Source: Macrostomum lignano (lineage: Eukaryota). From it: DNA of 64,000 bases. This document shows positions 20,520 to 47,303 of this stretch, in pieces (positions within the stretch are counted from its first letter, which is position 1; every line of letters begins with the position of its first letter). The position numbers and the translations under genes were made by a program. The stretch covers positions 248,001 to 312,000 of the forward strand of contig NIVC01000825.1 in the NCBI GenBank assembly GCA_002269645.1, read 5' to 3'. Under the pieces are notes generated by a model that ran no database searches, was not told the DNA's origin, and saw only the letters and a program-made list of their open reading frames with translations.

Positions 20520-23500
20520 ATGACAGCAAATGAAGATGCAGCTGCTCTTATCCCTGGTAAGTATATTCGTTTCACTTTGTTTGTTGCTAAAACTCATCAT
20601 TTTTATGTAACTATAATTTTTATTCATTATGCTCTAGGCAACAATGCTGCTAGCGACCAAGAGGCATCAGTTGGAGACAAATCTGTGCCATTCAGCTCCA
20701 AGGTACAGGCTGTCACCCACTATTTGAGGTAAGTGTGCATATTTGTGAGCATCAGGTGAACAATAGTTTAATAAATTTTATATTTTAAAAATCTGGTTTC
20801 AATTTTCAATGCTTTGATTCAATTTTTTTTTGAATGTAATAAACTATTTAAGGTGTTTTATATTAAGAAATTCAGAATATAAGCCACAATTTATTTGGCC
20901 ACCCGCAGCCTCCCAGACAATGTCAAGCGCCGTGTGCGCGCCCTTAAGAAACTTCAATTCGCCTCGCTAGAACAGGAGGCTGAATTCTTTCGCGAATTGC
21001 ACCAGCTCGAGGAGCGATTCGCCGGCAACTATCTCGCCCAGCTCGATCGGCGCAGGGAAATCGTCGCCGGCGACGTTGAGCCCACTGACGAGGACGCCGA
21101 CTGGTCTGAGGAGGCCGACAATGGCGGATTTGCCGCGCAGCTGGCTGAGATGCTCAAGCAGAAGGTTGGTTTGCATTTTATTGGACGCTACTGAAAGGTC
21201 GGGGGTTCGATTCCCGACCCACTCGGAGCAATTTGTGACCTTGAGCAAGACACAACTCTACATTACTTCAGTTCACTCAGCTGTAAAATGGGTGCCAGCA
21301 TTAGCTGGGGTAGTTGAGGGTGTGTGTGGCGACCCCCCATTCCTAGGACTGAACAGCCGTACGCAGCCTTTAGATGCGCCGCACTATAGCTGCGGCTGAG
21401 CTGTCGGTTGCACATTCGGCCCAATTAGGGCAGGCGCAATAAATTAATAATAATTATTACTAGATGTCAGTATACAAACTGTTAGACTTATTTTCGTCAG
21501 AATCACAGTAACTAAATTGAAAGCCCAGACCGAAATTTCCAAATCAGAAAGGGTGTAGAACGGAGGGTAGAAGTAATAGTAGCAGTAGTAGTACGAGCTG
21601 AGACAACTTTTTGCTGCAATTTCCTAGTGTTAGGCCTCAATTGCTCATAATTAAATACACCTTTTGTACATCCATACAAGCCCGATCAACCACCCTACGC
21701 AGGTGACCATCGAGGAGGTGGACGAATCTGGGGAGCGGAAATCCTCGGACGTTAAGGGCGTACCGGATTTCTGGCTAACAGCTATGAAGAATGTTGAGCT
21801 GCTGGCCGAAATGGTGCAGCCGCACGATGAGCCGGTTCTGAAGCAGCTCAGGGATATTCAAGTTCGACTGTTTAGCGGGGAGGAGGTGATTGACTAACTA
21901 GTATTGGCTACATTTCTCCCGGAGTCCTGCGCTTGTTCTTCACTGACTCACCTTTTAATCATTTCCTTACATACTCAGATGCTGGGCCAGCCTCCCAGAT
22001 CCTCAGTTGCTTAGCCAGCCTCCCAGATCCTCAGTTGCTGGGCCAGCCTCCCAGATCCTCAGTTGCTGGGCCAGCCTCCCAGATCCTCAGTTGCTGGGCC
22101 AGCCTCCCAGATCCTCAGTTGCTGGGCCAGCCTCCCAGATCCTCAGTTGTTGAGCCAGCCTCCCAGATCCTCAGTTGCTGGGCCAGCCTCCCAGATCCTC
22201 AGTTGCTGGGCCAGCCTCCCAGATCCTCAGTTGCTGGGCCAGCCTCCCAGATCCTCAGTTGCTGGGCCAGCCTCCCAGATCCTCAGTTGCTGGGCCAGCC
22301 TCCCAGATCCTCAGTTGCTGGGCCAGCCTCCCAGATCCTCAGTTGCTGGGCCAGCCTCCCAGATCCTCAGTTGTTGGGCCAGCCTCCCAGATCCTCAGTT
22401 GCTGGGCCAGCCTCCCAGATCCTCAGTTGCTGGGCCAGCCTCCCAGATCCTCAGTTGCTGGGCCAGCCTCCCAGATCCTCAGTTGTTGAGCCAGCCTCCC
22501 AGATCCTCAGTTGCTGGGCCAGCCTCCCAGATCCTCAGTTGCTGGGCCAGCCTCCCAGATCCTCAGTTGCTGGGCCAGCCTCCCAGATCCTCAGTTGCTG
22601 GGCCAGCCTCCCAGATCCTCAGTTGCTGGGCCAGCCTCCCAGTGTCAGTTGCTGGGCCAGCCTCCCTGATCTCCAGTTGCTGTGCGAGCCTCCCAGATCC
22701 TCAGTTGCTCGGCCAGCCTCCCAGATCCTCAGTTGCTGGGCCAGCCTCCCAGATCCTCAGTTGCTGGGCCAGCCTCCCAGTGTCAGTTGCTGGGCCAGCC
22801 TCCCTGATCTCCAGTTGCTGTGCGAGCCTCCCAGATCCTCAGTTGCTGGGCCAGCCTCCCAGATCCTCAGTTGCTGGGCCAGCCTCCCAGTGTCAGTTGC
22901 TGGGCCAGCCTCCCTGATCTCCAGTTGCTGTGCGAGCCTCCCAGATCCCCAGTTGCTGGGCCAGCCTCCCTGATCTCCAGTTGCTGTGCGAGCCTCCCAG
23001 ATCCCCAGTTGCTGGGCCAGCCTCCCTGATCTCCAGTTGCTGTGCGAGCCTCCCAGATCCCCAGTTGCTGGGCCAGCCTCCCTGATCTCCAGTTGCTGTG
23101 CGAGCCTCCCAGATCCCCAGTTGCTGGGCCAGCCTCCCTGATCTCCAGTTGCTGTGCGAGCCTCCCAGATCCTCAGTTGCTGGGCCAGCCTCCCAGTGTC
23201 AGTTGCTGGGCCAGCCTCCCTGATCTCCAGTTGCTGTGCGAGCCTCCCAGATCCCCAGTTGCTGGGCCAGCCTCCCAGATCCTCAGTTGCTGGGCCAGCC
23301 TCCCAGATCCTCAGTTGCTGGGCCAGCCTCCCAGATCCTCAGTTGCTGGGCCAGCCTCCCAGATCCTCAGTTGCTGGGCCAGCCTCCCAGATCCTCAGTT
23401 GCTGGGCCAGCCTCCCAGATCCTCAGTTGTTGGGCCAGCCTCCCAGATCCTCAGTTGCTGGGCCAGCCTCCCAGATCCTCAGTTGCTGGGCCAGCCTCCC

Positions 23501-46300: not shown

Positions 46301-47303
46301 CCTCCCAGATTCTCAGGTTAAGACTGACCTCCCAGATTCTCAGGTTAAGACTGACCTCCCAGATCCTCAGGTTAAGACTAACCTCCCAGATCCTCAGGTT
46401 AAGACTAACCTCCCAGATCCTCAGGTTAAGACTAACCTCCCAGATCCTCAGGTTAAGACTAACCTCCCAGATCCTCAGGTTAAGACTAACCTCCCAGATC
46501 CTCAGGTTAAGACTAACCTCCCAGATTCTCAGGTTAAGACTAACCTCCCAGATTCTCAGGTTAAGACTGACCTCCAAGATCCTCAGGTTAAGACTAACCT
46601 CCCAGATCCTCAGGTTAAGACTAACCTCCCAGATCCTCAGGTTAAGACTAACCTTCCAGATCCTCAGGTTAAGACTAACCTCCCAGATCCTCAGGTTAAG
46701 ACTACCCTCCCAGATCCTCAGGTTAAGCAACCATCCAGAACCTCAGGTTAAGACTAACCTCCCAGATCCTCAGGTTAAGCAACCATCCAGAACCTCAGGT
46801 TAAGACTAACCTCCCAGATCCTCAGGTTAAGCAACCATCCAGAACCTCAGGTTAAGACTAACCTCCCAGATCCTCAGGTTAAGCAACCATCCAGAACCTC
46901 AGGTTAAGACTAACCTCCCAGATCCTCAGGTTAAGCAACCATCCAGAACCTCAGGTTAAGACTACCCTCCCAGATCCTCAGGTTAAGCAACCATCCAGAA
47001 CCTCAGGTTAAGACTAACCTCCCAGATCCTCAGGTTAAGCAACCATCCAGAACCTCAGGTTAAGACTAACCTCCCAGATCCTCAGGTTAAGCAACCATCC
47101 AGAACCTCAGGTTAAGACTAACCTCCCAGATCCTCAGGTTAAGCAACCATCCAGAACCTCAGGTTAAGACTAACCTCCCAGATCCTCAGGTTAAGCAACC
47201 ATCCAGAACCTCAGGTTAAGACTAACCTCCCAGATCCTCAGGTTAAGCAACCATCCAGAACCTCAGGTTAAGACTAATCTTCCGGATCATCAGGTTAAGC
47301 AAC
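43304..47303. repeat. 27-bp satellite array (~4 kb), ending in a 52-bp dimer
   Basis: Monomer CCTCCCAGATCCTCAGGTTAAGACTAA. From ~46725 it alternates with the 25-bp GCAACCATCCAGAACCTCAGGTTAA. Confidence 0.99.

Follow-up and report, generated by a model that had tools for sequence, protein, structure and literature searches.

Two minisatellites in and beside a NAP1L1 gene of Macrostomum lignano share a 16-nt core

Two long minisatellites, S1 and S2, lie in and beside a NAP1L1 gene of Macrostomum lignano, and their repeat units share an exact 16-nt core that is joined to a different remainder in each array. They were found in 64,000 nt of genomic DNA (assembly GCA_002269645.1, contig NIVC01000825.1, positions 248,001 to 312,000 of the forward strand), which we will call the window. 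A shared core of this length goes far beyond what chance would produce, which implies that S1 and S2 have a common origin. We consider it moderately probable that both are neutral minisatellites, resident in an intron or an untranslated region (UTR), that descended from one founder unit and form a local, dispersing family.

The shared core of S1 and S2

S1 (21974–39778, forward strand) is a 28-bp repeat that extends over 17.8 kb, and S2 (43305–47299, forward strand) is a 27-bp repeat that extends over 4.0 kb. Tandem Repeats Finder reports 644.5 copies with 93% matches for S1 and 148.8 copies with 92% matches for S2. The consensus units from this program are CCTCCCAGATCCTCAG+TTGCTGGGCCAG for S1 and CCTCCCAGATCCTCAG+GTTAAGACTAA for S2. 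The 16-mer CCTCCCAGATCCTCAG is exact in both, and the two arrays have the same orientation. S1 makes up 17,805 of the 17,952 nt of a NAP1L1 intron (21886–39837), with a remainder of 88 + 59 nt (147 nt), and S2 starts 884 nt past the NAP1L1 stop codon. A first-pass annotation of the window had quoted both consensus units with their shared core, and had described the arrays as having the same orientation and lying about 3.5 kb apart, on either side of the last six NAP1 exons. We confirmed all of this; the gap is 3,526 bp. With head-to-tail units of 10–100 bp and arrays of 0.5 to tens of kb, S1 and S2 fall within the definition of minisatellites.

The exact core occurs 447 times in the window, always on the forward strand: 388 copies are in S1, 59 are in S2, and there are none elsewhere. 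None of 100 shuffles of the window contained the 16-mer, and when the S2 unit was shuffled 2,000 times, it never had a 16-nt stretch in common with the S1 unit. The core match between S1 and S2 is the strongest link among the array consensus units (z = 17.5), except for the link between the A- and B-type variants of S1 itself (z = 20.0). Hamming scans found 564 copies of the core with up to one mismatch and 641 with up to three, and the rest of the approximately 793 units have a core with small indels. The earlier count of about 780 copies is thus right for the number of monomers (about 793) and too high for exact cores (447).

The other parts of the units, which we will call the modules, are array-specific. 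As the first-pass annotation stated, they seem to be unrelated: TTGCTGGGCCAG (S1) and GTTAAGACTAA (S2) can be aligned only in a shifted TT. Identity between the arrays is 16/16 in the core and about 4/12 in the rest of the unit, and all the differences between the two units form one contiguous block. S1 is 64% GC and C-rich on the forward strand, with a GC skew of -0.21, and the core is a pyrimidine-rich tract with the same kind of strand asymmetry.

S1 and S2 evolve separately

To compare the core with the module within each array, we aligned every unit to its array's consensus and counted departures. In S1, 4.7% of core positions and 2.9% of module positions depart from the consensus; in S2, the values are 5.1% and 4.8%. 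So within either array, conservation is no higher in the core than in the module, which does not support the earlier suggestion that the core is under selection.

Exchange between the arrays had also been proposed, and we found no sign of it. There are no k-mers of the S2 module in S1 or of the S1 module in S2, and there are no S1/S2 hybrid monomers among the aligned units of both arrays. The derived variants of the core do not overlap either: S1 has CCTCCCTG.., GATCTC.., and GATCCCCAG, while S2 has CCTCCAAG, GATTCTC, and CCATCCAGAACC. Because they have no derived variants in common, S1 and S2 do not homogenize each other, and they have evolved independently since they separated.

Both arrays have ordered internal patterns of variants, as minisatellites do. 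A letter map of S1 shows recurring super-blocks of variant monomers, such as runs of type A followed by E-B-D-B-D..., or C-H-C-H.... The 3' end of S2 is a sub-array of 52-bp dimers (types F and G), and the monomers at its edges are degenerate. These block patterns show that both arrays expanded locally, through duplication of individual units as well as of blocks of several units. In other words, the S1 and S2 units were amplified separately, via unequal exchange or replication slippage along with duplication of multi-monomer blocks.

If S1 recombined with S2, NAP1L1 would lose its last six exons. Such recombination should be inefficient because just 16 of every 27–28 nt match. Identical arrays on both sides of these exons might perhaps not be tolerated.

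Decayed relatives of the core in the window

Two more arrays in the window contain the core in a decayed form. The first, i27 (41230–41653, reverse strand), is located between S1 and S2, within one of the NAP1L1 introns, and has about 14 units of 27 bp with 78% matches. Its reverse complement is GACCCAAATCATCAG+AGATATAACTAT. It agrees with the centre of the core, CCCAGATCCTCAG, in 11 of 13 nt (P = 0.0005 in a shuffling test), which is the best match among 26 arrays tested. The remainder of the unit aligns with neither S1 nor S2. The C-to-A change in i27 (GATCATCAG) recurs in a small number of S2 units, one of which is the final unit at the 3' edge.

The second, a23 (60051–60333, reverse strand), has 12 units of 23 bp and lies in an intron of a neighboring gene for a PP2A regulatory subunit B55-like (WD40) protein. 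Its reverse complement is CAACCCTGATCTCAG+AGCTGTCT, and it has the 12-mer CCCTGATCTCAG plus GCTGT in common with the H- and B-type monomers of S1 (P = 0.001). Because CTGA..TCAG is itself palindromic, there is also a gapped alignment of a23 to S2 on the same strand (18 of 23 positions). We set this aside in favor of the reverse-strand match to the H type of S1, which has the uninterrupted 12-mer. We also considered that the core might resemble a 3' splice site, and CCTCCCT the human hotspot 7-mer, but set both ideas aside, as i27 and a23 each run opposite to the gene that hosts them.

There are weaker echoes of the core in the arrays at 58946 and 60905. When we used tandem S1 and S2 units as queries for nhmmer, the only significant match was between the S2 F/G dimer and the 31-bp array at 58946 (E = 1.8e-4), and nhmmer is too insensitive for gapped units of 21–31 bp. 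We treated core-like matches at 50825 and 58611, which we read as ordinary coding sequence, and at 10960, outside of any array, as chance.

As controls, we used two other M. lignano loci with 61 kb in total, on contigs NIVC01001022.1 (L002) and NIVC01000504.1 (L003), which brings the M. lignano DNA that we examined to about 125 kb. A query with Gypsy pol, intended to bring in many more loci, yielded a single M. lignano protein, so the control sample is limited to these two. None of the 15 arrays in the control loci has a decayed core, and none is close. More broadly, pairs of arrays that are related at p ≤ 0.01 make up 11% of pairs within the window and 5.5% within L002, and 2.6% of pairs between loci. 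We think that i27 and a23 are best read as older relatives of S1 and S2 whose cores are already decaying. So the earlier idea of a modular family of cores joined to palindromes holds up in part: the core recurs, decayed, in at least two more arrays of the window with other remainders. The palindromes are another matter.

The inverted repeats are probably incidental

According to the first-pass annotation, the variable part of each unit forms an inverted repeat, GCTGG-G-CCAGC in S1 and AGGTTA-AGAC-TAACCT in S2. Both are present as written, and each takes in bases of the core and of the next monomer, but neither is unusual when compared to shuffled units. The S1 stem (5 bp with a 1-nt loop) is reached by 14–23% of shuffled or random units, and the S2 stem (6 bp with a 4-nt loop) by 2.5–3%. 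With a 1-nt loop, S1 cannot form a hairpin. Furthermore, the abundant B-type unit of S1 (..TTGCTGTGCGAG) destroys the palindrome. When we tested 26 array consensus units, taken from the window and the two control loci, only S2 had a palindrome with P < 0.1, and Fisher's combined P was 0.99.

We also folded four tandem units as single-stranded DNA. The z-scores were -1.56 (S1) and -1.01 (S2) for consensus units, and -0.16 (S1) and +1.85 (S2) for common variant units. In these shuffles and folds, S1 and S2 lack the excess of inverted repeats and the stable fold of palindrome or cruciform satellites. Stems no better than those of shuffled monomers had been named beforehand as an outcome that would count against the core-plus-palindrome idea, and our results do not support its palindrome half. 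The inverted repeats of S1 and S2 are best read as incidental.

We noticed that S2 units have either GGTTA-AGAC-TAACC, which is perfect, or GGTTA-AGAC-TGACC, with a T-G mismatch. The first unit, at the edge (43305–43332), has GGTCA-AGAC-TGACC, which is perfect again. This looks like a compensated change in two steps, but it is a single unit and proves nothing.

S1-type units at other loci

Using a translated piece of S1 as the query for an exhaustive HMMER protein search, we identified three M. lignano gene models in UniProt that end, N- or C-terminally, in S1-type units with both the core and the S1 module (..SCWASLPDPQLLGQPPRSSVAGPAS..). These are A0A1I8J1R5 (P0124, ARL3-like), A0A1I8FC40 (P0154), and A0A1I8JRP3 (P0143). 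The S1-type ends are probably repeat DNA that the gene predictor took for coding sequence. The unique parts of these three proteins are not encoded in the window, so whole S1 units have spread to three or more further loci of the M. lignano genome. (A word-indexed protein search with a perfect translation of S1 returned nothing. This reflects a limit in how candidates are retrieved, since a local phmmer run scores the true matches at E ~ 5e-21.) As to whether there are many dispersed members across the genome, S1-type units are present at these three or more loci and at none in the 61 kb of control loci.

Two environmental sequences have the core joined to yet other sequences. Metagenome contig Ga0115013_10174613 (L001) has a 24-bp repeat at 650–711 (2.5 copies of GACCTCCCAGATCCTCAG+AATCCG), in which GACCTCCCAGATCCTCAG occurs twice, 24 bp apart. 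And a protein (P0140) from a JGI metagenome contig of 987 nt back-translates unambiguously, from all three frames, to a 28-bp repeat, CCTCCCAGATCCT+TCCGCAATCAGCGCT. Given the size of the databases, these matches could be due to chance, or they could come from the DNA of a related flatworm.

Literature searches with the core and unit sequences found no paper, nor did they find a published description of M. lignano repeat families of this kind.

A proposal for the origin of S1 and S2

We propose that part of an array, or just one unit, was copied into another place within NAP1L1 or next to it. Candidate routes are repair of a double-strand break, template switching, and re-integration of repeat DNA from a circle. 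One of the two lineages would then have had some 10 nt of its unit swapped in a single complex indel or templated insertion that left the 16-nt core untouched; because the differences lie in one contiguous block, they fit a single replacement better than gradual divergence. The separate amplification described above followed. The 16-nt identity is then best read as inherited and not yet decayed. Local seeding was one of the explanations offered in the first-pass annotation, and it is supported by a shared core that is far beyond chance.

The genomic background fits this proposal. Simple and tandem repeats account for 15% of the M. lignano genome, and the simple-repeat fraction was described as unusually high (Wudarski et al. 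2017, PMC5730564). In the window, the tandem repeat share is about 42%. At the locus of an older NAP1 paralogue (L002 10001–30059), which is 20 kb long, nearly every intron has a different array with units of 13–28 bp. In a genome with about 15% tandem repeats and an array in nearly every intron that we examined, local families of arrays are expected.

Several observations weigh against this proposal. In the S1-S2, i27-core, and a23-S1-H comparisons, it is always the same part of the unit that is retained, and the remainder defies alignment. This is not expected if neutral decay were uniform, and the core may thus have a special role after all. Also, the approximately 125 kb of M. lignano DNA contained no intermediate unit and no donor for the S2 module. 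(We considered GTTGAGACTAA at 42548 as a donor, but it is at chance level, with 2 matches versus about 0.7 expected by our own estimate.) And neither the direction nor the date of the seeding can be derived from one window.

The alternative that fares best is that the core is mechanistically or functionally special, either as a protein-binding box or as a motif for breakage, recombination, or amplification, so that it is retained while the rest of the unit is replaceable. This would explain why the same 12–16 nt or so are common to S1, S2, i27, and a23 while the remainders differ. The strand-asymmetric, pyrimidine-rich composition of the core is consistent with such a role, and so are the environmental sequences with other remainders, if those matches are not due to chance. 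The 19-bp box in Meloidogyne (PMC8097292) and the conserved junction motifs of nematode satellites (PMC3694981) present a similar picture. However, a special role seems hard to reconcile with a core that is at least as variable as the module within both arrays and that is visibly decaying in i27 and a23. Furthermore, it is the whole S1 unit, and not the core alone, that is found at the three other M. lignano loci. We view a special core as possible but rather unlikely. If the core is a hot spot or a binding site, then it offers a handle on how minisatellites proliferate in this genome; if not, S1 and S2 illustrate ordinary satellite turnover.

In a bolder version, Macrostomum has a super-family of minisatellites throughout its genome, with CCTCCCAGATCCTCAG (or just the central CCCAGATCCTCAG) as a signature box that itself drives the birth or spread of arrays. 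The box would be a hot spot for breaks or recombination, or a binding site for a nuclease, a transposase-like protein, or a chromatin protein. New arrays would repeatedly form from the box and whatever sequence is adjacent, which would help to explain why 15% of the genome is tandem repeats. We doubt that this is the case.

We also considered that the core might belong to a transposable element, as one of its ends or as a repeat inside it, and that new arrays are seeded passively at the sites where this element inserts. S1 units are present at four or more loci, transposons are abundant in the genome, and some other short arrays of the window (54141–54281) do lie in a dispersed element, which is shared with L002 (35190–35322). 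However, the 2-kb flanks of S1 and S2 have nothing in common except for copies of an unrelated tRNA-derived short interspersed nuclear element (SINE), several hundred bp away. Where transposon-derived repeats would be flanked by element sequence, S1 and S2 are flanked by unique intron or UTR sequence. As these flanks are unrelated and the host intron has just 147 nt besides S1, it appears that no transposon carried the arrays. The core is also absent from the long terminal repeat (LTR) element and the SINE in the window, and we noticed no terminal inverted repeats at the array ends that we read, without a dedicated search for terminal repeats or target-site duplications. An origin from a transposable element therefore seems improbable.

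Finally, it is very hard to believe that the arrays are of independent origin, with a 16-nt identity due to convergence, chance, or an assembly artefact that joined unrelated reads: long arrays are error-prone in long-read assemblies in general (we have nothing specific to this one), but the shuffles never reproduced the 16-mer or a 16-nt match, and both arrays have ordered internal variants and unique flanks that match known exons.

If S1 and S2 did arise from one founder unit, then this locus is a clean, datable case of one minisatellite yielding another with a new half-unit, in and beside an essential gene. S1-type units have also colonized several genes. M. lignano is a model for regeneration and stem cells, and its genome is unusually rich in tandem repeats.

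Other features of the locus

The NAP1L1 gene is on the forward strand. We checked its exons against M. lignano NAP1L1 proteins. The coding exon LPDNVKRRV...MLKQK is at 20904–21164 (the start is approximate), and VTIEEV...FSGEE, at 21703–21885, is directly upstream of the intron that contains S1. The last six coding exons, which end with ...ECKQQ and the stop codon, are at 39838–40129, 40881–40900, 40993–41127, 41834–41854, 41951–42007, and 42388–42420. The spliced exons are 99% identical to a UniProt fragment of M. lignano NAP1L1 (P0002), 88% identical to a second M. lignano copy (P0001), and about 60% identical to the older M. lignano paralogue (P0003; 58% by BLASTP and 61% by alignment). At the locus of the older paralogue, upstream of the exon that matches 39838–40129 of the window, there are 23-bp, 28-bp (64 copies), and 13-bp (102 copies) arrays, and none of these is related to S1. 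In the window, the intron directly 3' of that exon has a (TCTA)n microsatellite of about 153 units (40163–40773); at the equivalent position, the paralogue's locus has a 23-bp array (L002 18169–18845).

We identified the PP2A-B55-like gene (58300–62065, forward strand) by eye from its translated exons. It has its own minisatellite in each visible intron and in its 3' flank: a 31-bp array at 58946, a 22-bp array at 59813, a 23-bp array at 60051 (a23), a 22-bp array at 60905, and a 21-bp array at 62131. The 22-bp array at 59813–60055 (ATAGCTTTGGAATCAAGATTTG) directly adjoins the 23-bp array at 60051–60333 (TGAGATCAGGGTTGAGACAGCTC) via a hybrid unit. Specifically, the first two 23-bp units have the ..AGATTTGA.. 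of the 22-bp unit instead of ..AGCTCTGA... This junction suggests that one array may have been born at the edge of the other.

The tRNA-derived SINE is about 290 bp long; it contains a box that resembles a T-arm (GGTCGGGGGTTCGATTCC), and its 3' end has an AT-rich tail. It has multiple copies at both NAP1 paralogue loci: 21183–21457 (forward strand), 47699–47978 (reverse), 48676–48840 (forward), and 49761–49888 (forward) in the window, and 10377–10666, 12041–12259, 33258–33350, and 34308–34462 in L002. A Gypsy-like LTR retrotransposon lies at about 11449–18013. Its open reading frames (12388–17539, reverse strand) encode a frameshifted gag, protease, reverse transcriptase, and integrase, and there are LTR-like pieces at 6829–7195 and 17666–18009. 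It is about 80% identical to a copy on contig NIVC01000504.1 (L003 9190–15895), and it is unrelated to S1 and S2. The dispersed element mentioned above (54141–54390 in the window and 35190–35565 in L002) includes short tandem repeats with units of 13, 19, and 25 bp (AATACTCAGACTA, AATAGAACGCTACCAGAAT). Its ATACTCAGAC is also present in a 24-bp repeat at 19305, and the 9-mer ATACTCAGA is present at the left edge of S1.

Comparison with known repeat systems

The first-pass annotation knew of no described example of such arrays. In fact, core-sharing minisatellites, the 19-bp box repeats of Meloidogyne, and nematode satellites with junction motifs have already been described. Jeffreys, Wilson, and Thein reportedly showed in 1985 that families of hypervariable minisatellites with units of 10–60 bp share a core of 10–16 bp across many loci. 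This core is said to have been suspected of being a recombination signal, and the families are said to be GC-rich with strand asymmetry. Similarly, S1 and S2 share a short core that is joined to locus-specific sequence, and S1 is GC-rich and strand-asymmetric. However, the M. lignano core is unrelated to the human GGGCAGGAXG, and we saw only two intact and two decayed members, all within 40 kb.

In Meloidogyne, divergent tandem-repeat monomers share a fully conserved 19-bp box and form centromeric DNA that is associated with CenH3 (Despot-Slade et al. 2021, PMC8097292). In contrast, S1 and S2 lie in an intron and a 3' flank, and their core is as variable as the rest of the unit within arrays. 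In nematode satellite libraries, satellites of low identity have short motifs in common at monomer junctions, and these were proposed to promote rearrangement between different satellites by illegitimate recombination or by cut-and-paste (Mestrovic et al. 2013, PMC3694981). The abutting arrays at 59813–60333, which are joined through a hybrid unit, resemble these. Unlike in nematodes, the window has no junctions between S1 and S2 and no mixed higher-order repeats.

In Drosophila, the Rsp-like and 1.688 satellites colonize new sites in gene-rich regions and then expand locally by unequal exchange and by movement of higher-order blocks, with microhomology-mediated repair and circular DNA put forward as vehicles of the spread (Sproul et al. 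2020, PMC7403614). The Drosophila units are over 100 bp and keep their identity after moving, whereas here one array gained a new half-unit. In Candida glabrata, compound minisatellites combine two types of repeats, and there is evidence that they are actively created de novo (Thierry et al. 2008, PMC2566889). Those repeat types are intermingled within one coding array, while S1 and S2 are two distinct non-coding arrays whose units never mix. Overall, S1 and S2 are best classified as core-sharing minisatellites or as a satellite "library" whose members are related by descent.

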